Source: Pavona decussata
Taxonomy: Eukaryota
Reading direction: 5' to 3'
NCBI GenBank assembly: GCA_977016875.1
Contig: CDRNST010000006.1
Span: 4,278,001-4,342,000 of the forward strand
Length of the DNA: 64,000 nucleotides
Shown here in pieces: positions 1-23,400 of the stretch; the first letter of the stretch is position 1, and each line of letters begins with the position of its first letter. The notes beneath the pieces were generated by a model, which was given only the letters and a program-made list of their open reading frames with translations, searched no databases and had not been told where the DNA came from. Made by a program: the position numbers and the translations under genes.

Positions 1-2870
1 GACGTCCTCCAAGATAGGACAAGGTGTCAAAAAATTCCACGACGTCCTCCCTATATTCGTGACGCGGATCATAATAGAATTCTACGACATCTTGAACATA
101 TTTATAAAATATGTGTTCCTTTGATATTTTCCCCCTTCGAATCAGTTCATTTAGCCTGACGCAAATGGGGTCAACATTTTCTAGTCCGATTGCAATCAGA
201 CGCCATTCCTTGTCAATACAAATGAAATCTGATGAAGAGTCAGACTCGCAAAACTCGGCATTGTCGTCGCTATCTTCAGATGATAGCTCCATACTGTTGT
301 CACTATCGTACACTGAATTGCTTTCTGTGTCCGAACTGAAAAAAATGCACAATAAATTGTTTCAAATGTCATTTTACTATTTTTGACAACAAGTTTCATT
401 TACAGAACGAGACGATTATTTTAGAACTTGGCAAAGAGCGTTCTATTAATTCACATCTGCATGAGACACTCGAACTTACTACGCTCTCGTGTCCTCTGTG
501 TGGGAGATGTCCACATCTGAATCTACACTGCAAGCACTTTTCTCGTTTGATCAGGTTCCCTCTTCGGATAGCTTTGGCCTATTGCTCAGCATTGATACCA
601 GAGTTTGTGGCGCTTTCTTTTTTGATTGACATGATTTAAAATGATCTAAGAGAGAAGTAGAGATTTTTAAACACCATCTCGGCAATCCAGAATGCAAAAT
701 CGTTAAACAGCAGTGCGCAGCTTAGTTTACTATCTCTTTACATCCAGCTACTGACTAGTTTTTGCTCAGCTATCCCTCTCAAAACAAGCGCAGAGTGTTC
801 ACATAGAAATGCGCTATGCCATACGCTACACGATTCGGCGGGGTCTCATCCATTCTTGCTGCAAAAACTTTCCTTTCGAATCAAATTCCAAACGTTTGCC
901 AGACAAATCTAAGCTAACACAGATAGGATCCTTCAGGCGTGATGCGGACAAATGACTAAGAAGAGGAGCGAAAAGGGTTTAACGTAAAGAGAGCAATCAC
1001 TTACAAGATTGAACGTAAGACACTCTTCCCTTCAGACCGGCATCAAGTCGTAGCTGAACTTCATTCAGGCAGATACCCCATTTCACTCTCCAGGCCCAGA
1101 GTACAGTCTTCTTACCAAGCTTAACATCAGCCTTCTCTCTGTACACCAACTCACGTTTACCCAGCTTTTTCAACTCTAAAAGGCAATCATGGTCATCAAT
1201 ATTTGAACCAGCTGGAAGTTTTAAATTAATACGATGCTATTGAAAGCCAACTTGGATCGATGAACTACTTTCAAATAAAGTCGTATAACAAGAAAGGGAA
1301 ATATCGCCTTAAAGAACCGAGATTCGGAAATTCCGGTGACAAAATGTACAAAATAAATTATAATATTATCCTCGTAAAAGCTGGAAATAGCCGATCAAAA
1401 ACAAACCATTGACGTTTTAAACGGCCCTATCACGCGGCTGTCATGACCCCTATGGCGATCTGTGATCTTTTTTCGTGAACCTTGGCCGTAACAAGATATC
1501 TAGTTTCACAACGGGACTCTTTTGACCCTCTTATCCTTTGTTGATCTTTGTTACTTGATGACCTCAACTCAAGTGGCACGTTTATGAATCAGTACGCGCG
1601 AGATTCGAGCTGACTCTTGAACACCAGTAGTTCTAGGTCTTCTTGTAGTTTTGGAGAAATTAAATCATTAAACGCGCCGTCGGTTAAGACGGTTAACATA
1701 GACAGCGATGTCGGTTAACACAGACGATGATGATCCCGACGTCCAAGATGTTATAAATTGAGTGGCTCTCTATTACGAAGAGGGTAAGAGCGGAAGTTCC
1801 TTTTTACGAAAGGAGAAATTTCGGGCGCAACTTCCACAGAAGGTGAAGTCATTAAAGACCGTCAAGGAAACAGTTAGGTAAGTTCTGTTTCGACTGTTTT
1901 TTCTAGCTACCATTTTAGAACCTTTTTATTCTGGACTCATTTCATCGCTAATGTCGTCATCAACGTGACAACAAAGCTAAACTGATCGCACAAACGAAAG
2001 ACATACATTGTAACGAGTCACGTTGCACTCTTAAAGTATTCGCGTAATTTCGTCTATAGTTTGGTAAATCTCAGGCTTGTCGTGACCTTGGGGCGCCTTT
2101 GTTCGAAACGTCAATGTGGACGCGGAATTATGAACAACTAACACTGACAAACCACACTTTCTTTATTGTTTGTCATTAGCCGCTTTGGAGGTGTACATGA
2201 TGTTGCTAAAAACTTTGGCCTTGGAAATCACATAGAGGTGAAACTTGGAAGGGTAGACAAGTCCGAACAAATGAAAGGACCGCAGTGTTTCGCTATAAAC
2301 ACTGATTCCCAAGTTTTACTCGAAATGCCGTCTACAAGGACTGGTGCAAACACCCTTCAACGTAAGTGAAATATTAGTACAATTTCTCTTCCTTTGTGGG
2401 CCTTTATTTGCTCACTCACTTTAGTGCAATACAGGGCGAGGCAGTGGTACACGGTGGTTTAACACTTCCCATTTTTGGATTAAATCTCAGTTACCATATA
2501 TCCAATTGAAATGGCCTTTTCTACTAATACACCGAGAATTGTGGTGAAAGTTCTTGCTAAAGATGGTGGTCAATCGAATGCAGAGGTGGTTGGGCAAGTG
2601 AGCAACCCAGGCCTTAAGGAACGGAGTTTAAATTCTACAGAGAGGGAAAAGATCGAAAAAGGTACTTAAATTGTGTTGTAATGATCATGGCTCTTAATGA
2701 TTCTCAGCTTTCATAATCCCGGTTGTCATGCGTAAACTGGTTAAATATCCCGTGTCCCGTTCATATCTACAATCCCAAATCTTGCTCCCTTTTTAACCCA
2801 AATCCCGAATCCCGGCCTTAAAATAAGCCAAATCCTGGATCCCGAAAAACCTATTGGGGACCCTCTTCTA

Positions 2871-3568
2871 TCAGCGAGAGGCATTTTTCCGGATTGTCAC
2901 AACAAGCCAATTTTGCTGCCTTCGGCGACTCTGCTGTTGCTGTTGGAAGCAAAACCAGCACGTCGAATGCCATTTCCCAAAGTAAAAAATGTCAGAGGCC
3001 ACACTTTGGGTGCCTCTGCCATAAACAATTTTGGGAGTGATGTGCCGGCATCGCTTCCAGTAAGCTGTTTGGCCAGATGCAGACAAAGACATAACTTGCT
3101 TTGAGTCTCCAATAAACCATGATTTGCCAAAGTCAATGATCACCGGGTTGTAGTAATCTTTCTGTTTCTCCAGCACAACGTTATTGGATTTTAGGTCATT
3201 GTGCGAGATACCACGTGGATGTATCTGCCGAAGACCTTTTGCGGTTTCTTTCAGAATTCTCGGCCAGCTGGGTTTGGTGAGAACTGGATGACTAGACGAA
3301 AGGGCTTGCTTTGTGTGATAATTCCAAACAATAGTGGCAGACATGGATGATCGCCTTACTGACTGATCATGGTTGCCTTGTGGCAAACTTCTTTCTTTAC
3401 GTTGTCCAAGGACGTCTTTTCTCTAACCTTGAACTCCTTGATGGTAACAATGTATCCTCTGTAGTGAGCAAGGCGGCATGACCCAAAAGTTCCGAAGCGG
3501 AAGATCTTTTTAGAGTGTATGATTTCCGCAAGGCGAATTTCGTTTATCACTGGGCTGGCACATCTCAT
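2871..3568 (-). pseudogene. Intronless protein kinase domain pseudogene, copy 1
   Basis: Fragments give GTFGSC (Gly loop), IVTIKEF (VAxK equivalent), HNDLKSNNVVL (catalytic loop), IIDFGKS and SDIFYFG. It is broken by an in-frame stop (ISQ*GDH) and a frameshifting deletion. Confidence 0.8.
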
Positions 3569-6318
3569 GTGCGATGGACCCTTTTTACCTGTTTCTTTGG
3601 TCTCAGCCTGCCTTTCTCACAATACCACGACTTTTGGGGTGTTCCTTTCACTTCCCTCATGCGATGGGGGCTCAAAGAAGCAAAGGTTTCGTTGACAATT
3701 ATAGATGAAACATTCTCGTTCAGACCATACCATTGTGATATGCTTGTAACCAGCCAAAAAGAACTTTTGTTTTTCTGTACAGAACATTCGGAGAGAATTG
3801 TCCTCGCACTACTTTGTTTTCGCTATGTTATAAAATAATTTCTTAAATTTTCCTGCTCTGGTAAAAACATAAATGTTAAGAGAATACTAAAACTAAGAGC
3901 AAATTTATATATATAAATATAAATTTATATATTTCTGAGCTGATTTTCCAGAAGGTGGCTACAGAAATTGACGTTTTTGTTACCTTTTCTTAAGATATTT
4001 ATTTATTTATTTATTTACTTTTTAATTTTTTTTTAGCGTTTCTTAATGAATTTCACATCACTAACTTAATAGATTACAATGGTCATTAGCAAATATTTCT
4101 AAAACCAAAATATTTTTCTCTTACTCCCCCCCCTCCCTCCCTGATTTGCAAACCTAGCCCCACTCCCTCTCAAATGTCTTCTAACCGCGCAACGATTTGG
4201 CTTTGAATTCGGCGCGCGCTCTGAGATCAGAACTAAGTCATTAGACCTAGCGTTTCGTTTGGTTTGTCTGAAGCAAAGTTTTCCTGAGGACATCATTAAG
4301 TCTAGTGAGGGAAGAAGTCTTACGAGTGGAGTTTCTGCCTCGTCTAATATGCTTGCTACCAGTAGTCCTCTTTTAAGCTAAACGGGTAATTTTCAGTTAC
4401 TCGGACTTGGACTATTAAGAGCCAATGTCGGAAAATATCGAGAATCTCAAATCAGTTCTAAAAATTCGAATTTTGGCTGATACCACCCAAACATCCCTGT
4501 GGGTGAACTATTTCAAGAAATGATATTAAGAAATCCCCAAGCGCTTTACATTTTGAGAATTTTAGAAAAGTTCGAAAATTCGCTAAAAATACATTTTTTT
4601 ATTCGGGAAATGGGTGCAAATTTCAACAATTTTCATCGACATAGCACAAGCGCGCAAGAGCTCCTATTGACTTGATATTACTCATGTATTTAGCAGACAT
4701 ACAAAGCTTTAAGACCTCATAAAAAGGTTTTGCAAAATAACTATTGTAATATAGTTTCTGGCTTTTATTGTGTGCACCCTGATTGTGTGTTGTTTTGGCA
4801 GTCAAAATAACGCCCAACTTCAACCGTCAAAAGTCGATCCTGGTATGTCACAGATTGGAAAAAATACTATACTGAACAGAAGAACAGTTATTTTATTAAT
4901 TATACCTGAAGTTTCAGCTCTGCAAATTAAAATGCTTGCGAGTAATAAAATTTTAACTTGAGCCCCCAAGTCGCCGTGCGCGACAAGAACGTGGAATGTA
5001 AACAAAGGAAAACATATGCAAATCAAGGAGAAAATCACACGGAAGTTATAACTAGCCCGTCAAAGCGCAAAGAATTGGTGGAAATTCTGTTATCTAAACA
5101 GGTATTGCTATCTGAGAGACTGATAAAGCGAAATTATCCGTACAATAATAATAAAAAAGGTATTTTAGGGCTAGAGGGCCAAGGGTCATGAAATCGGGTC
5201 GGATGAACTCGCGCGGATGGTTCCGAGGTAAAAAAAATCAATCATTTTAAGTCCAAACGCTCTTAAAGAAGCTTTCAAAATGGACCATGGAGCAAACAAA
5301 CAATGTCAGTAAAAGTAGATATTTTGAGGTATGATAGAAATGAACCATAAAATGTAAGTTTATTTTTAGAAATATAAAGAAATGACAGAGGCCACTACGG
5401 GCCATCGACGATTCCGTTTTAAATGGTCCGTCCCTTGGTTATACTAGGCCATATTAAATCCAAAAAGTAACAAGATACAACAAAATAAATCAGAGTTTAA
5501 AATAATCTTAGAAAAGTATAATACTCACTTGGGGATTAGATTTCCCGCATCGCAAATTTCTAATTATATACATTTTAGGATTGTTTACTCACTGACCTTG
5601 TGTCGTGTTCCGTGTTCCAAGTTTGCACAGTTCTCACTAGAGTAAAACCCTCCGTCTTGTTTAAACATTTCATAAAAAAAGACTAACTTATTTGTTCATT
5701 AGAACTATTTATAGATAGGTAGTAAATAATCCTCGCATAAACACAGAAAACGAAGAAGCCACTTCATCTTGTTTATTTTGGTGTTGTGTTACCTGTCACG
5801 TTTTTCAAGTCACGTGTTGCTGTACAAAGTATTGTGAAAATGAAATATAACATTTTCTTTAGTTATTTCTTTTAGGGTAGTAAAATAAAGGGGACTAAAT
5901 AAAGGAGGACTGTGCAATCAGAACTAAAAGAATCTCCTAGTGCACCTACGCCATCTCCGTTTATATCTTCATAAGCAAAATACTACTTCTCTCCAGAAAT
6001 GAATAGGGGTGCCAATCGCACCCATGCCGGAGCCCTTAAGCCCCTTTCCAGGGTCATTCTTCTTCTAATCCCTGGAGTTAAAGAGACAGAAAGGGAAGTA
6101 AGAAGAAGAGACTCCAAGAGTCATGAGAGCTTTGGCGGTACCTTTCAATGACTTTAAGTCCATTGATCCGTTAAAAAATGAGAAATGCTTGTCATTTGTT
6201 TCCTCATTTCTGTTGGACACCACTTGAAGAGGGCACATGTAGAGTACCTCTTCCAGTGTTTCGTAAATTTTCTGCCACGGGCTGCGCAAGTTTTATAGGG
6301 AAATATCCCCCGGCTTTA

Positions 6319-14948: not shown

Positions 14949-15485
14949 TCAGGGAAGGTTTACTTTGTTTAAGCATTAGGGTTACCGTTAAGGAATCGGG
15001 GTATCTTCCGAGAGATCCTTTATGTGTGCGTTTTTTTATAGAACCACGGACAACTATAAATCATTTTTAAGCTAATAAAATGTAGAATCCGAAAATAAAA
15101 CTAGTTCATTTTTATTGTTTCAATAAGCGCGCACGAGCCTTCAAACACAAACCTGGCGATGTTCACTTGACTGAATTATGAGCCTTTGCATTAATGTGAA
15201 CATCCAGAAAAACTGGATTTTATCAATCACAATATGATAAACTACAAAAGGGTGTGAGGCCTTTTCGATATTCTTATTGGTTCCCGAGAAAAGCAATTGT
15301 AAAGTTGGCCAAAAGAAAATTTACATATGCTGGGCACGCGCTAGGGCGTCACGATAAAAATATTTTGAATTTCGCAAAACCCTGACACGCTTTTGTAGCT
15401 AAATGTCTGACCAACATGCTGGCCAAATTTCACCAAAATCCATCATATCTTCATACCCTATTAATTCATTTAAAGAAAGGTAATT

Positions 15486-15549
15486 CTTGAATTCCCGGCA
15501 CCCAAAAAACTGACAACCAGAAATGCGGTGCGGGATAAGCAGACAATTC
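15486..15549 (-). repeat. Split direct repeat B2 (64 bp; matches B1 at 15982-16045)
   Basis: cttgaattccc(g/c)gcacccaaaaaactgacaaccagaaatgcggtgcgggataagcagacaattc occurs twice with one mismatch. Confidence 0.95.
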
Positions 15550-15763
15550 TTAGCCCATTTATTGAACTAACCAACTAATCACAAGAAAAAAACAACTGTT
15601 TAGACACCAAAAAATTAAACAAACTCTATATGTTCGATGCGGCCAAAGTAAATTGAATAAACAAAACCACTTATAATGACTGTCAATCATCAGGAAAGCA
15701 CAACTAAAAATCGTTACGAGGAAATGGATTACAGGATTCCAACCAAAAAATAAAAAAGAACAA

Positions 15764-16045
15764 AATTTAACTGTCCACTTGTAAAAATCTACAATGAAAC
15801 TTGTTTACTGTTCAGTGAATATATACTTGCTAGTTTACATATCAGACTTTTTTCCCATAATCTCACGCCGGCACTTAAAACACACTGCCGACAAATGCAC
15901 TTGTGCTTGGGAATTCAAGAAACCATTTATCTTTTGTTTCATTACGCTTCGCTACATTCAGGCAAAGATAAATGAACAATTCTTGAATTCCCCGCACCCA
16001 AAAAACTGACAACCAGAAATGCGGTGCGGGATAAGCAGACAATTC
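15764..16045 (-). repeat. Internal A2+B1 repeat junction
   Basis: The 218-bp A2 (near-identical to 27678-27895) directly abuts the 64-bp B1. Confidence 0.95.
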
Positions 16046-16310: not shown

Positions 16311-17315
16311 TTAAAGAGCCAAATTTCTAGATACCACAAGGGTATTTTCCAAAGATTCATCGACATAACCATCTGCGGCTTGGATACTGCGCCAACCACC
16401 ATGTCTACGCCATACTCTCCGAGAAACTCCGCTGCGTGCTGCTTGGGAAGCACCACCTGAACGAAGGCTATGTAAACCAAATTCGTTCGAGTCCAAACCA
16501 AGTTCGGAAATCATTTGACGAAACTGTTCCCGTGCCCGAGAATATGACAGAGCAGCTTGTCGCAGCTTGTACCCGGCACACAATTTCTGGCAGAGACAAA
16601 ATAAAGACTGGGATGGTTGATGCTCTCCGCGCCCAAGGAATAACTCTAACAGTTTCACTGGACAAGAGCTGGAAGGTAAACGAGCAACTTTAACCACAGA
16701 TCCCTGACGGAATTGATCGTTCTTACGCCTGTCTAGGAAAATAGACATGTGGGTGGCGCAAAACCTTAAGTCACAGGCACGTAAGTCACGCAGCTCTGAC
16801 CAACGTAGGAAAGCACAAAAACCAAGCGCAACCAGCGACACCATTTGTAGGTTCGGTAGAGAAGCACGAGGGTGACCATAGGAACGAATCAGCGCCCTGA
16901 TGTGATGAGATTCAATAGGCTGCTTTTTCTTAGATGGACCAGCCAGGAGGCGTTTTAAGCCAGCCAAGGTCTGAGAAACGAGCGGATCGTTGACAGGATT
17001 AGGACATCCAAGCTGCTTATGTAGCCATGCAATGCCATAAGCTGCTCCAAGGATTGACGAGCGAGATAAGCCTCGGTCAGAAAGACTTGTTAAGTAGAGA
17101 GCAACTGCGGTTGGGTTAGACTGTAAAGGAGGAAACGTGTAACACTTGCACCAGTCAATCCATCGATTGGCTGCCCCTGCATACGAAGACACGGTTGAAA
17201 CGGCACAGTCATTAAGTATGACAGTCTTTAACAGTTCTACAAGCCTCTGAATCTCCGCGTTGTTCCGTTGGTAAGGCGACAAGCCTAAAGTGAAAATCAA
17301 CAATGTCCAAAACAT
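16311..17315 (-). CDS. Tyrosine recombinase (phage-integrase family) of the PAT-like element
   Basis: Open 334-aa ORF with FLRWSEL (R), RKNDQ (K), HSLRSGG (HxxR), HGGW and GYV (Y). The true 5' end may be spliced. Confidence 0.92.
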   Translation of the reverse strand: MFWTLLIFTLGLSPYQRNNAEIQRLVELLKTVILNDCAVSTVSSYAGAANRWIDWCKCYTFPPLQSNPTAVALYLTSLSDRGLSRSSILGAAYGIAWLHKQLGCPNPVNDPLVSQTLAGLKRLLAGPSKKKQPIESHHIRALIRSYGHPRASLPNLQMVSLVALGFCAFLRWSELRDLRACDLRFCATHMSIFLDRRKNDQFRQGSVVKVARLPSSSCPVKLLELFLGRGEHQPSQSLFCLCQKLCAGYKLRQAALSYSRAREQFRQMISELGLDSNEFGLHSLRSGGASQAARSGVSRRVWRRHGGWRSIQAADGYVDESLENTLVVSRNLAL

Positions 17316-17728: not shown

Positions 17729-19705
17729 CTAAGGAAACACAATTCTCAAAGCAAATACTCTACACGAGGGAATACCATGCCGGAAAAGATCCGCGGCTGC
17801 GGAACCAGGGAGAAAAGTAGATTCATGTAAAGGAATCTCCCGCCAGTCAAGAACAAAAGGGTGGAAAACCCCGGGGCTTGGAGACACCAACGGCCACCAA
17901 TGAGCAGACTGCCGAAAGGGGATAATGAGAGTGCCGTGCTCTCTACCCAGCTTCATGTGATTGATAACCCTGGGAATAAGGAACACTGGGGGGACCAACC
18001 AATTGTTTTCCCCTCCCCAGCTGACGGTAAAAGCATCAACAGTTTCGGTCCCAGGATACCACCACTGAGAACAAAACCTGGGCAACTGGAAAGAATTATG
18101 ACTCGCAAAATGATCTACAGTGTGGGGTCCCCACAGAATATCCAACTGGCGAAAATGGACAGGGTTGAGCATCCAATCATCAGTGTCGACAACTTTCGAC
18201 CAATAATCAGCTTTGAAATTAAAGTAGCGAGGTATCCACTCCGCAGAAAAGCGAATACCGGCTTCATGGCACAAATTGTAAATGGCAACCGCTTCTTTTT
18301 GCAAATGAGGCTTACTACTGCCGACGGACAAAATACTGCAGACGCTCTGATTGTCAGATCTATGCTTGCACTCCTTACCCGCCAAAAGACCGGAAAACGA
18401 CTGAAGAACAAATCTAATTGCACCAATCTCGCGGAAAGAAGAGCTGCATAGGGCCTCGGAACCCAACCAGTTCCCTCTAGCGATGTGCGTACCAAATTGA
18501 ACAATAAATCCCGCCCAACGCACATTGCTGGCATCCGAATAAGACAAAAGCTCTATCTTCGGGGAGGGCCTCCAGATTGGTTTGCCGCACAAACGAAAGA
18601 AATTATCTCTCCAAAAATTGAGTTCCTCTACGGCTTCACGCGTTAAAGCCACCTTGCAGCTAAGGCAATGAACTCTATTAAGGACTGCGTACAAGGCTCG
18701 GGTGCGCAAACGCACAATTGGACCTAAAGCGAGCTCCATGGAAATAAGGGTACCCGTAATACGAGACACATCCCTAGCCGTGGGTGAAACATCGTCAAGA
18801 AGCAGTGAAATCAGATTAAACAGGTGATCAATTTTGCCTGGTGGGATACTAAATTCTCCTTTGGTAAGGTCCAAAATAAAGCCTAAGTGCTCCCCTTTTT
18901 GGCGCGGTTCAAAATTGCTCTTCTCCTCATTCACTAGCAGGCCAAGGCGATCAAGATCGCCTCGCACAAGTTGAGCTTCCTGAGAACACGAATCTTTACT
19001 TGAATTGGTGCCGATACCGTCGTCCAAATAGACAGAAATCCTAATGCCTGTTGACCGCCAGTGTGAAACAACTGGTCTTAACAATTTGGTGAAAATGTAA
19101 GGAGACGTACTTAAACCAAAAGGAAGCAAACAAAACAAAAAATAGCGTGGCTTACCATCGAAAGTAAACGAAAAAGCCAAATACTTCCAATGCTCTTGAA
19201 AAATGTCAACATGATGGTAGCCATTACGAAGATCGAAAGTAAAAAACCAATCACCTGGCTGAAGAATTTCCGCCACGACTCGAAGGTCTTTAAACTTAAA
19301 CTTACGCTTGGCTAGGTGCTTGTTAAGAAAGCGAAGGTCGAGAATCAGTCGAAGTTTGCCATTCTTTTTAGGAACTACACCTAAGGGACTGCAAACATGA
19401 ACTTGGTCACGCTTGACTTCCACCGCGCTACCCGCCAACAACAATTGCTCGATAGCTTCACAAACAAAAGCTCTATTATCAACAGCGCTTTTATGATTAC
19501 TTAAGAAATACCTCAATGGAATTGAAACAAATGGTAACTTATAACCGCTTTCAATAACACTAAGAACAAAAGAAGAGGCCCCAACAGAACGCCAAACATG
19601 CAAAAACTTGCGCAAGCGGCCTCGAATCCAAAATACTGAGGAAACGCCCGTGTCAAGTTCAGCCTCGCCGCGATCCGAAAATTCGTCAAAATCAGAGTCA
19701 GCTAG
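17729..19705 (-). CDS. pol: Reverse transcriptase - RNase H - methyltransferase-like Pol of the PAT-like element
   Basis: Motifs LRLILDLR, FDLRNGYHH, LPFGL and YLDD; RNase H YSDAS/REI/SDNQ/ADYWSK; C-terminal DHFAS..DAFTVSW..LVPP. The frame is open from 19705, immediately after the gag TGA. Confidence 0.93.
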   Translation of the reverse strand, partial: LADSDFDEFSDRGEAELDTGVSSVFWIRGRLRKFLHVWRSVGASSFVLSVIESGYKLPFVSIPLRYFLSNHKSAVDNRAFVCEAIEQLLLAGSAVEVKRDQVHVCSPLGVVPKKNGKLRLILDLRFLNKHLAKRKFKFKDLRVVAEILQPGDWFFTFDLRNGYHHVDIFQEHWKYLAFSFTFDGKPRYFLFCLLPFGLSTSPYIFTKLLRPVVSHWRSTGIRISVYLDDGIGTNSSKDSCSQEAQLVRGDLDRLGLLVNEEKSNFEPRQKGEHLGFILDLTKGEFSIPPGKIDHLFNLISLLLDDVSPTARDVSRITGTLISMELALGPIVRLRTRALYAVLNRVHCLSCKVALTREAVEELNFWRDNFFRLCGKPIWRPSPKIELLSYSDASNVRWAGFIVQFGTHIARGNWLGSEALCSSSFREIGAIRFVLQSFSGLLAGKECKHRSDNQSVCSILSVGSSKPHLQKEAVAIYNLCHEAGIRFSAEWIPRYFNFKADYWSKVVDTDDWMLNPVHFRQLDILWGPHTVDHFASHNSFQLPRFCSQWWYPGTETVDAFTVSWGGENNWLVPPVFLIPRVINHMKLGREHGTLIIPFRQSAHWWPLVSPSPGVFHPFVLDWREIPLHESTFLPGSAAADLFRHGIPSCRVFALRIVFP

Positions 19706-19803
19706 TCACTTAGCGGAAGAGGAAACTTTACAATCCTTGATAAAATGGCCTGCTTTGCCACAACCAAAGCAGCGATACACAGAAGTTTTTTCTCCGGTAC
19801 GGG
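19706..19803 (-). pseudogene. gag: 3' end of PAT-like gag with CCHC zinc knuckle
   Basis: Manual translation gives RTGEKTSVYRCFGCGKAGHFIKDCKVSSSAK* (CX2CX4HX4C). It is not in the ORF track. Confidence 0.85.
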
Positions 19804-20174
19804 TGTATAAGCTCCAATTAGCTTATTGAACAGAAGATTTAATCTTTTACTGATGAGATACACACGAGTTTTATAAACATACACAAGCGCGCGGTTCTAA
19901 AATAAAAACAAAAATAGCGGTAACTAGAGTGATACCGAAACGAAATGAAGCTAAATAGACGAAATAAATGCAAATAAACAAAAATACAAGTTGTTTACCT
20001 CATACAGTAAGAGAATCCCGGTAAAAGAAGCAAAATGCACTGATAAATATAACCTCTGATATAAACTTTCCTATAGAGCACATGGCAAGTAAAAAAAAAA
20101 AAAAACAAAGGCGCTACTGAAGAATCATGGGAAAGCAGGCCCGCAATACTTGCAAAGTACGAATAGATCCTACA
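19804..20174 (-). repeat. BEL 3' LTR (371 bp)
   Basis: By eye it differs from the 5' LTR by 3 substitutions and a 2-nt poly-A length change. It is preceded on the minus strand by GGGGCCGG at the PPT position. Confidence 0.95.
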
Positions 20175-20437
20175 CCGGCCCCGAAAGACCAACTAGATAA
20201 GCTAGTGGCCTTTAAATACACAAGGATCTATGTTCATCTGTCCACCGCAGACTTAGTCAATGTAAATAACAATCCATATCACTCTTTTGGCCCGCATGCC
20301 AAGTAAAAAAATAATCACCAAAGGGCGAGTTCAGTGGTGACTAAACCTACGACAAATTCGACTATCCATTTTGTTTGTTCGTTTTGGACACATCCGATCA
20401 CAGTTAACTTGAAACACAGTTTCTTGGTCAATCACTC

Positions 20438-23400
20438 TTAAATGGGTTCAGGACGCAACAGGTCTCCTTCCAGGAGGCAGAGTTTCCTGACATCACGCCG
20501 AAAGCGCTTTGCACTAGCTGTACGTACAACAACTTGTCTGACATTTCCCTTTGAATCTGGAAAGACTTCCTCAACCAAACCTAGTGGCCAACGGCCTCGT
20601 GGTGACCCTTCGTCTACAATTAAGACAAGGTCTCCTACTGCTAAATTCCGTTTGGGGTAAAGCCACTTCTGCCTCTCTTGAAGCGTGGGAATGTATTCTT
20701 TGATCCACCTTGCCCAAAACATGTCCGCTATAGTTTGAGCTTGTTTCCACCTCTCACTGGGCTTAGGGTTGTGCACCACTGGTACATCACCTGCAGGGCC
20801 ACATGGGTTCCTATAGCATAGAAGCAAAGTGTTAGGCGTTAGAGCGGAGGGGTCTCGATGGTCATCACACTGACGGGTGAGAGGGCGATCGTTCACTATT
20901 TTCTCCGTCTCGCAACTAACAGTGAGTAAAGTCTCATCTTCAACCAAACGATTCCCAATAAGAGCATTCAAGTGCTTTCTGACAGATCTGATCATGCGTT
21001 CCCACACACCACCTGTGTGACTGGCGCTTGGGGGAGAGAAGTGCCAATCGATGCCTTTAGCCCTCATTTGATCTCTGATTCTCTCTTGGTTCCAAGCTTG
21101 CAAGGCTTGTTTGACTTCAACTTCAGCACCCTTGAAGTTTGTACCATTATCACTAGATAGTTCTCTTGGGGGGCCCCGTCTGCTTAGAAATCGGCACACT
21201 GCTTGAATGAACGAATCCGTTGAAAGGTCCTAGGAGATCTCAATGTGCATTGCCCTGATGGCTAGGCAAGTGAATATGCAGCCATAGCGCTTTGCAGTGC
21301 CTCGTCTCCATTTCACCTTCAAGGGACCAAAATAATCTATGCCAACAGATGAGAATGGTGGCATTCCTGGAGTCACCCGAGCCGCAGGAAGTGGAGCCAT
21401 GATCTGGGTTCCAGGGTTTTGGTTCCGACGACGGCATGGTATGCATCCACTGACAATCCGCTTTACTGTGCTTGGCCCTTTGATGATCCAATACTGTTGG
21501 CGGACAGCAGCCAAGGTTTGATTAGTTCCAGAATGACCGCTTGATTCATGCAGATGACGTACAATAAGCCTTGTTACGTGATGGTCTGATGGCAGAATTG
21601 CAGGGTTCTTCACCTCGCCGCTCAATGGTGTGTTTTCCAGGCGACCACCAACCCTAACAACGCCCCTTTCCACAAATGGATTCAGCTTGGCCAACTGGTT
21701 TGCACTCCTTTTAGTGAATGGATCAAGCATACAACAATCCCTTTGGACCAACCTAACAATTTCTTCCGATGCATCAACGATTTCTTTGACCTCCAACGGC
21801 CCCCTGCTCAACGAAGTTTGACGATGAGAGGACTTCCTCGACTGAAACAGCAAATACTTCTTGAACCTCAACAACCACGCTACCGACTTCTGCAACTTGT
21901 ACCAACATGAGGGTTGGTTGATAAGACGACTAAGAGTTTCCGGGAGTTTCCCATCAGAGACAACTATGGCACCAACCCGAGCAGTTCCTTTCTTTACCTC
22001 TGCGTCTGTTTCTTCAACCTCAGGTAAATCGGATGGTTGTTCTGGCCACTTACGTTCTTCTTCCCATAGAAACTGAGGTCCTCTGAACCAGAAGCGCATC
22101 TGTTGCCGGCCCCGATTGGTCCCTAATTCATGGATGCCTCTGGATGCCAGATCAGCAGGATTCAGGTGCGTTGGTACATGCCTCCACTGGGACGGTGTTG
22201 TGGAATCATGAATCAGCTGCAATCTATTGGCTACAAAGGTCTGGAACCTCCTTGTAGTATTCCTCAAGTATCGTAGCACAACTGTGGAATCCGTCCACAG
22301 CACAACATCGTTGAGGGGTAACTGCAATTCTTCGCGAAGTTGTTTGTCAACCTTTACAGCCAAAGTGGCTGCAGTCAGTTCCAGCCTTGGTACAGTGACT
22401 GTTTTCAGTGGGGCCACCCTGGACTTCCCCATGACCAAGCTACAGTGGATACGATCCTCAACGTCTGTGAATCGTAAATATGATGCAGTCCCATATCCAC
22501 TCACAGAGGCGTCCGCAAAGTGGTGAAGCTCGATGCTCTTAATACCTTTGAATTCTACTGGTTTGTAACACCTGGGTATCTTGACAGAAGGCAACACATG
22601 AAAGCTACTCTCCCAAGCTTTCCATGGTTTTAACACTTGTTCTGGGAGTTCCTCATCCCAGCCATGACCAAGACGACAAAGTTCTTGAAGAATAAGTTTA
22701 GCTGGTAATGCCATAGGTGCAGCCAAGCCAAGGGGGTCATAGACTGAAGCAACATATGATAAGATCCCCCTCCTGGTCTCTGCTTTAACCGTGCCACCTC
22801 CAAATCCAAAACTGTCTTCCTCCACATTCCACTCAACTCCTAGGGCTCTTTCTGTTGGTAGCCTTTCCAAGTTTAGGTCCACTGTGGATGCTCGTTCACT
22901 GGTAGGTACATGATGCATGACGCTCTTCTCATTAGAGACCCACTTAGTCAGTCGAAAGCCACCACGAGCCAATAACACAGGGAGCTCATCAACAAGTTTG
23001 ACCGCTTCCTCCTTCGTGGCAAGAGACTTAAGACAATCATCCACATAAAAATTGTTGCGGACAGTCTCCATAGTGTTCTTGCTGAAGTCCCCTAGGTTGT
23101 CTTCAGCCGTCTTTCTAAGAGCATATGAGCAACAACTCGGAGATGATGTTGCTCCAAAGAGATGAACAACCATTTGGTGGTCGACTGGCTCCTGGTCGAT
23201 GTCCCCTGCTGGCCACCACAGGAACCGTAAGGCTTCGCAATCCTCAGGTTTAACTTTAACCTGGTGAAACATTTTCTCGACGTCCGCCATCAGGGCAACT
23301 CTTTCTTCCCGGAACCTTAGCAGTACTCCGACGAGTGAGTTTGTGAAGTCTGGGCCCTGTAGGAGCTGATCATTTAAAGATGTGTTCTGAAACTTCGCCG

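Follow-up and report, generated by a model that had tools for sequence, protein, structure and literature searches.

A conserved in-frame UGA-CUA(G) at the gag-pol junction suggests programmed stop-codon readthrough in PAT-like retrotransposons of Pavona decussata and other corals

The sequence analyzed here is a 64,000-nucleotide stretch of the genome of the coral Pavona decussata (GenBank assembly GCA_977016875.1, contig CDRNST010000006.1, positions 4,278,001 to 4,342,000; hereafter the window). Its minus strand carries a PAT-like tyrosine-recombinase (YR) retrotransposon of the order DIRS, in which the gag and pol reading frames are in register and are separated by a single UGA followed by CUAG. 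All copies and relatives of this in-frame type that we examined retain the TGA, and in each of them it is followed by CT. On the basis of these comparisons, the junction is probably a site of programmed stop-codon readthrough that would produce a Gag-Pol fusion, a reading to which we assign a rough probability of 0.75.

Each half of the window element was analyzed on its own, and the proteins encoded before and after the stop were used in separate searches. The junction, on the minus strand, reads ...TCC GCT AAG TGA CTA GCT GAC, in a frame that is unbroken apart from the TGA. The 3′ end of gag (19709..19803) contains a CCHC zinc knuckle of the pattern CX2CX4HX4C at 19771-19730, which is recognized by Pfam as zf-CCHC (within the 31 codons preceding the TGA) and zf-CCHC_2. 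The last sense codon of gag, AAG (19711-19709), is followed by the UGA, the proposed readthrough site (19706..19708), and by the CUAG (19702..19705) that makes up the 3′ context of the type II, or mammalian UGA-CUAG, motif. The pol open reading frame (ORF), encoding reverse transcriptase (RT) and downstream domains, occupies 17729..19705 and comprises 658 codons plus a stop at 17731-17729, with a Pfam RVT_1 match at amino acids 111-277 (E 1e-19). Its first part (19616..19705) is an acidic linker without AUG that ends at a mechanically called TTG 'start'. The initial annotation, which proposed the readthrough site, had described a zinc-knuckle frame that ends at this TGA and continues with CTA GCT GAC, 30 sense codons on the 5′ side of the listed TTG start at 19615 and a first pol Met about 100 amino acids beyond the YLDD motif. 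Direct reading bears out the first of these points, the linker numbers exactly 30 codons (19705-19616), and the first in-frame Met, at codon 323, lies 97 codons past YLDD (codon 226). Gag and pol of the window copy thus share one frame across a single TGA, with no further stop and no AUG for 322 codons.

Conservation of the junction was examined in a census that covered approximately 50 of the 138 scored RT loci of this genome, and in relatives from other assemblies. Lineage A consists of the window element and three further copies of this genome (L002-L004, refetched as L032-L034), which are 97-98% identical and read GCT AAG TGA CTA GCT. A Logan contig with 81% Pol identity to A (L084) has AAA TGA CTA TCG. 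More distant members are lineage A2 (L081, from another assembly, 66% to A), in which AGA TGA CTA GAG is preceded by an intact gag of 422 amino acids and followed by a pol that is open for 674 codons, and lineage A3 (L082 and L085, from two further assemblies, 64-69% to A), which has AAG TGA CTA GAA. Two other families of this genome, B and C, show 42-48% RT identity to A and have AAA TGA CTT TAT and TCA TGA CTG TGC, respectively. A relative of B from Oculina patagonica (L090), placed near B on the RT tree, has AAG TGA CTA ATT, and three relatives of C from other assemblies (L086, L087 and L088; 52-71% to C) have TGA CTA GTG, TGA CTA TCT and TGA CTA GCC, respectively. Within this genome, in-frame TGA-CT was kept in 13 out of 13 copies of families A, B and C, including four copies of A that all have TGA CTAG; it was also found in seven relatives from other coral assemblies, O. 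patagonica included. Counted by lineage, TGA-CT was present in 10 out of 10, CTA in 8 and CTAG in 5. No relative has a sense codon at this position, from the copies of A through the relatives at 81%, 66% and 64-69% to the two families at 42-48% and their own relatives, and both frame and context are kept although the flanking codons have diverged to synonymous saturation.

The context itself is specific to the in-frame layout. Among the Leu codons of these pol ORFs, CTA is the least used (6.8% of them and 0.74% of all codons), and its occurrence after the stop in 8 of 10 lineages has a probability of about 2e-8 among Leu codons in a simple binomial calculation that ignores shared ancestry. TGA-CT was observed in all ten in-frame lineages versus none of ten lineages with other gag-pol layouts (P 1e-5 in a Fisher test that again ignores ancestry, and 0.006 when three clades only are counted). 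The bases after the gag stop in these ten other lineages, among them one Branchiostoma element and two elements found in other assemblies, are T, G, A or CA, but never CT. Since synonymous sites are near saturation between the compared lineages (proportion of differing synonymous sites, pS, 0.5-0.8), passive retention of the heptamer is unlikely.

The sequence downstream of the stop behaves as coding sequence. In the first 45 codons after the TGA, the ratio of nonsynonymous to synonymous differences (pN/pS) was 0.30 in the zero frame for family A (p = 1.6e-4), compared with approximately 1.0 and 2.9 in the other two frames, and 0.48 for family B (p = 5.5e-4). For family C, pairs gave values of 0.47-0.80 over the same span, two of three being significant. 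Such a coding signature indicates that translation of the linker follows the gag frame from the very first codons. Further downstream, RT is under strong purifying selection in TGA-bearing lineages (ratio of nonsynonymous to synonymous substitution rates, dN/dS, 0.09 between A and the 81% relative), which implies that Pol is expressed from elements carrying the TGA. In addition, a single gag-pol ORF is present in a related family (L053) and in many database proteins of about 950 amino acids that combine zf-CCHC and RVT_1, so that a Gag-Pol fusion would be a workable product in this group.

Where pol could start on its own was also considered. In eight of the nine lineages that have an in-frame Met in pol, the first one lies past the conserved N-terminal motif (K/R)G(R/K)L, and in seven it lies at codon 170 or later; that of L087 is at codon 61. 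In lineage A3, whose pol is cut at 139 codons, no Met was found. Thus, the claim that Pol has no usable AUG of its own stood for eight of the ten lineages, the window element included, but did not hold for the other two, namely family C of this genome, with a Met at codon 13, and L087.

Transcripts of these elements could be found in public RNA data. Eight polyadenylated RNA-seq runs labeled coral metagenome contained 60-66% of the sampled words of the stretch from the junction to RT, and contigs from four runs in two studies were colinear with an uninterrupted sister copy over gag, the junction and RT, beginning where the 5′ repeat ends (one contig has 4631 nucleotides). At TGA-CTAG, they showed neither a joint nor a base change. 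Because the contigs cross the junction colinearly, a full-length unspliced RNA that carries the stop codon is present. With regard to its source, the sister copy L003 has a 226-nucleotide insertion in RT (2609-2834) and a 1-nucleotide insertion at 1813. The latter, peculiar to this genomic copy, is missing from the RNA contigs, and since they lack its insertions, L003 is not the transcribed copy; the copy or copies that are transcribed are intact at both places.

From these features and by analogy with characterized systems, we infer ribosomal readthrough, together with its efficiency, the inserted residue and the response of cnidarians to the motif. The element would be transcribed as one unspliced polyadenylated RNA of about 5 kb. 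Most ribosomes would terminate at the UGA and release Gag, which has 294 amino acids in intact copies. A minority would decode the UGA by a near-cognate tRNA, termination being weakened by the 3′ CUA(G) context, and would continue in frame to yield a Gag-Pol protein of about 950 amino acids with RT and the downstream domains. Such a leaky stop would set a high ratio of Gag to Pol.

It should be noted that several observations weigh against this interpretation. First, the lineages are phylogenetically related, so the binomial and Fisher probabilities overstate their independence, and in this genome family B carries CTT, and family C CTG, rather than CTA. Second, the linker evolves fast, one of the three C pairs shows a weak coding signal in it, and the Met at pol codon 13 of family C is a possible start. 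Third, contigs lose rare isoforms and an RNA library can contain DNA. Fourth, the stimulatory structure that was to be sought by folding the sequence downstream of the stop did not appear: in six lineages and windows of 60, 100 and 140 nucleotides, nothing significant or shared was found (z-scores of minimum free energy against dinucleotide shuffles from -1.7 to +1.7), and synonymous divergence was not lowered after the stop. No stable conserved stem-loop of the alphavirus type, starting about 9-16 nucleotides past the stop, was present in these six lineages. The gammaretroviral type III arrangement (UAG-G plus a pseudoknot 8 nucleotides on) was likewise absent, the stop being UGA followed by C with no significant structure nearby, although no dedicated pseudoknot search was made. 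Readthrough efficiency would therefore rest on the short context alone. Finally, the Ty1/copia element Tca2 of Candida albicans also has gag and pol in frame across a UGA, yet its flanking sequences gave no readthrough in yeast, its bypass mechanism was left unresolved, and the abstract of its report mentions no CUAG motif (PMC2194720). It is mainly because Tca2 shows that an in-frame gag-UGA-pol arrangement need not give context-driven readthrough that our confidence was held to about 0.75.

Among the alternatives, the one that survives best, albeit unlikely, is that Pol is made apart from Gag, by internal or non-AUG initiation, by termination and reinitiation at the UGA, or from a short RNA with an internal promoter, and that the shared frame is incidental. 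Tca2 offers a precedent, as it has a minor promoter inside the gag-pol junction and its junction alone gave no readthrough in yeast (PMC2194720). The pol Mets of family C and L087 would also suit such a mode of expression, and a pol ATG is used by other families (L041-L050, L091 and the Branchiostoma element L089). However, separate production of Pol leaves unexplained the invariant TGA-CT, the rare CTA in 8 of 10 lineages, the shared frame of gag and pol and the coding constraint from the first codons past the stop. In addition, no AUG able to yield a complete RT is available in 8 of 10 lineages, and the RNA contigs are continuous from the 5′ repeat via gag into pol.

It is less probable still that splicing, through a small intron or an alternative junction, takes out the UGA or connects the start of gag with pol. 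Splicing elsewhere in the element was suspected in the initial annotation, and splice-like sites do occur near the junction: a weak 5′ site, AA|GTGACT, at the stop of the window copy, and AAAG|GTAAGT 20 nucleotides downstream in family C. Moreover, an NCBI gene model of O. patagonica seems to be spliced over the stop. The possibility that pol is reached by splicing was checked against the RNA, and the assembled polyadenylated contigs of four runs pass the junction colinearly, without joints and with the TGA kept. L081 has AGA TGA, so the GT at the stop is not conserved; the linker is constrained in the gag frame, and the Oculina model is the output of a predictor rather than transcript evidence. 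Splicing over the stop was therefore rejected. As for the model itself (ACROYT_G021206, 754 amino acids; L090, GCA_052425735.1, 2501-4996), it begins at the gag ATG and reaches pol with a non-colinear translation, and the gene predictor seems to have put an intron over the in-frame TGA CTA. Intron calls of this kind are likely to be a systematic annotation artefact for these elements.

The view that the TGA is a functionless nonsense lesion of degraded copies is very improbable. It draws on the heavy damage of the window copy, whose gag is interrupted by a BEL/Pao element and also has a frameshift, a deletion and a nonsense codon. In contrast, the TGA is found at the same place in 13 out of 13 copies and in the 7 loci of other assemblies, several TGA-bearing copies have both gag and pol intact (for example L081), and Pol is under purifying selection in the lineages that carry it; a copy-specific nonsense mutation was accordingly rejected. 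Recoding of the UGA as selenocysteine, of which UGA is the codon and for which this is the sole support, can be dismissed, as no selenocysteine insertion sequence (SECIS) or other Rfam family reached the gathering score in the full-length relative L081 or in L003, and CUA(G) is a motif that weakens termination, not a selenocysteine signal.

We therefore retain programmed readthrough as the preferred explanation of the junction. As to how widespread and how old such a strategy is, the RT trees split the in-frame lineages into two or more separate groups and require three or more changes of state, the root being uncertain. A single origin of the in-frame lineages was thus not recovered, in that the trees do not unite them as one clade under this uncertain rooting, and we make no claim on the ancestral gag-pol state since the root of the RT tree is uncertain. 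On balance, we lean slightly towards the view that a large set of cnidarian PAT-like elements has long maintained UGA-CUA(G) readthrough to express Gag-Pol, possibly as an ancestral trait.

Other gag-pol layouts occur side by side with the in-frame stop in this genome (L035-L039, L051, L058, L065, L067, L041-L050 and L053). They comprise pol in a +1 overlap with gag (five families), pol in a -1 overlap (one family), an independent pol that starts at its own ATG and a fully fused ORF. The gag stop context TGA TGC is common to three of the overlapping families (two +1 and one -1), and the +1 overlaps might represent programmed +1 frameshifts. In the related Branchiostoma element (L089, GCA_019207075.1), the pol ORF starts at its own ATG at 2501, approximately 1 kb beyond the gag stop (TGA CAC, at 1446). 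Positions 771-6090 of this locus are spanned by an annotated spliced gene model of 433 amino acids with a weak Phage_integrase match, and the organization of this element is unlike that of the coral elements.

The assignment of the window element was based on its complete structure. Beyond an insertion described below, the host element continues at 26946 and ends at 27895, so that its length without the insertion is about 5.3 kb. All of its parts lie on the minus strand. The 5′ terminal repeat A1 (27678..27895) belongs to a split direct repeat and recurs at 15764-15981 as a direct repeat with 98% identity; matches to other copies start here, and the RNA contigs stop at the repeat edges. The 5′ part of gag (26946..27649), with its ATG at 27649-27647, matches L002-L004 at 97-98% and is severed from the remaining gag. 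Downstream of pol, a YR ORF of 334 amino acids with an ATG start (16311..17315) matches Pfam Phage_integrase (E 5e-10), and the 3′ repeats (15482..16045) consist of B1 (16045-15978), A2 (15981-15764) and B2 (15549-15482). The same A1...B1A2...B2 layout, without inverted repeats, was observed in L081, a natural full-length relative of 5.7 kb. The element combines RT (RVT_1) with a tyrosine recombinase (Phage_integrase) in place of a DDE integrase, and the CCHC zinc knuckle of Gag was found in all lineages. A check for a methyltransferase-like domain gave only RVT_1 for the window pol in Pfam at E <= 0.01, and precomputed PF05869 (Dam) matches for several relatives. Because of the split-direct-repeat layout, which L081 shares, the window element is a PAT-like tyrosine-recombinase retrotransposon of the order DIRS. 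A further observation concerns L081, in which 4-5 units of a 78-nucleotide tandem repeat (67-99% identical) lie at 5065-5550, between the end of pol and the start of the YR ORF. The array overlaps a small called ORF and the first YR codons, and it may bear on YR expression.

The window copy itself is dead and only preserves the signal. The initial annotation had mentioned other lesions in its gag, and these are real and greater than was stated. Besides the insertion, they include one nonsense codon, an in-frame deletion of 29 codons relative to intact copies and a 1-nucleotide deletion (a G lost between 19786 and 19785) that puts the sequence out of frame immediately 5′ of the zinc knuckle and is confined to the window copy when compared with L002-L004. 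In the sister copies L003 and L004, gag is intact, with 294 amino acids, and terminates at the same TGA. The insertion is a young BEL/Pao long terminal repeat (LTR) retrotransposon of 7,142 bp on the minus strand (19804..26945), with LTRs at 19804-20178 and 26577-26949, TG..CA ends and a 5-bp target-site duplication, CCCGT. Its LTRs are 99% identical, and Pfam recognizes Peptidase_A17, DUF1759, Integrase_H2C2 and DUF5641. The position 19803, given as the upper bound of the readthrough region in the initial annotation, is the breakpoint of this insertion; the gag is broken because of it, and the BEL/Pao element is no part of the recoding signal. An ORF of 1786 amino acids in this insertion (21230-26590) covers gag, protease, RT, RNase H and integrase; the C-terminus of the integrase and DUF5641 (20438-21199) lie beyond a single change of frame. 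Elsewhere in the genome, the LTR ends have about 30 matches, often paired about 6.8 kb apart, which suggest that the family is active.

Expression of Pol in the order DIRS is largely unstudied, and the open papers name no mechanism; a conserved seven-nucleotide signal provides a testable answer for one large group. If our interpretation is true, this order would have its first assigned recoding signal, and the short UGA-CUAG motif would already work in non-bilaterian animals. Extension of the motif from vertebrates and arboviruses to cnidarians would in turn argue that its action depends on a feature universal to the eukaryotic termination complex. Recognition of the signal would also improve the annotation of coral transposons, as predictors break or 'splice' the elements at the stop. 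Finally, a single genome that holds in-frame stops, +1 and -1 overlaps, separate ATGs and fused ORFs offers natural comparison sets for the interconversion of these layouts.

Comparison with known systems places the junction among type II readthrough contexts. The heptanucleotide UGA CUA G is identical between the window and four other lineages, on the one hand, and the type II cases, on the other, which include alphavirus nsP3/nsP4 (Sindbis virus, SINV, and O'nyong-nyong virus, ONNV) and the vertebrate genes OPRL1, OPRK1, AQP4, MAPK10 and MDH1; the stop in the coral lineages is always UGA. The strength of this context, asserted in the initial annotation, is upheld by the literature. UGA-CUAG is a validated readthrough motif with an efficiency of 3.5-31% for native contexts in human cells and 1.5% for UGA-CUA alone, UGA is the best stop for it, and 12 nucleotides of 3′ sequence are enough, so that in the vertebrate genes the short context suffices (PMC4132726). 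SINV and ONNV use UGA CUA, to which alphaviruses add an extended 3′ stem-loop (PMC13517186). These cases concern RNA viruses, or host genes whose products gain short C-terminal extensions, and in this the coral elements differ from them. The alphaviral stem-loop was not found in the window element, and the function of the motif in Cnidaria is proposed by analogy.

A close parallel in genetic logic is provided by the gammaretroviruses of the murine leukemia virus (MuLV) type, in which gag and pol also share one frame interrupted by a single stop. In both cases, readthrough by a minority of ribosomes would set the Gag:Pol ratio. In MuLV, the stop is UAG followed by G, with a pseudoknot 8 nucleotides downstream, whereas the coral element has UGA, CUA(G) and no detected structure, and is a tyrosine-recombinase element without LTRs or integrase. 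Readthrough of the MuLV type is classed as type III (PMC13517186). Tca2 resembles the coral elements in that gag and pol are in frame across a UGA, and its Pol comes from full-length RNA (PMC2194720), but it serves as a warning rather than as a model.

With regard to gene content, the coral elements share a CCHC Gag, an RT-bearing pol, a tyrosine recombinase and A1...B1A2...B2 split direct repeats with DIRS1-like and PAT-like elements, and PAT-like elements have been reported in Nematostella (PMC3266345, PMC4157794). The published DIRS, PAT and Ngaro elements differ in having separate or overlapping ORFs, and in the open literature a stop-codon or readthrough signal between their gag and pol goes unmentioned. 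More generally, open full-text papers on DIRS, PAT, Ngaro and recoding hold no mention of readthrough in YR retrotransposons, although a prior mention in subscription papers or Repbase is possible. The expectation that such a signal is undescribed for DIRS/PAT elements is consistent with this literature, the founding subscription papers lying outside that scope. Gag-pol readthrough in gammaretroviruses and the UGA-CUA(G) context in alphaviruses and vertebrate genes are classic; what appears to be new here is the use of readthrough by tyrosine-recombinase retrotransposons and the evidence for the motif in Cnidaria.

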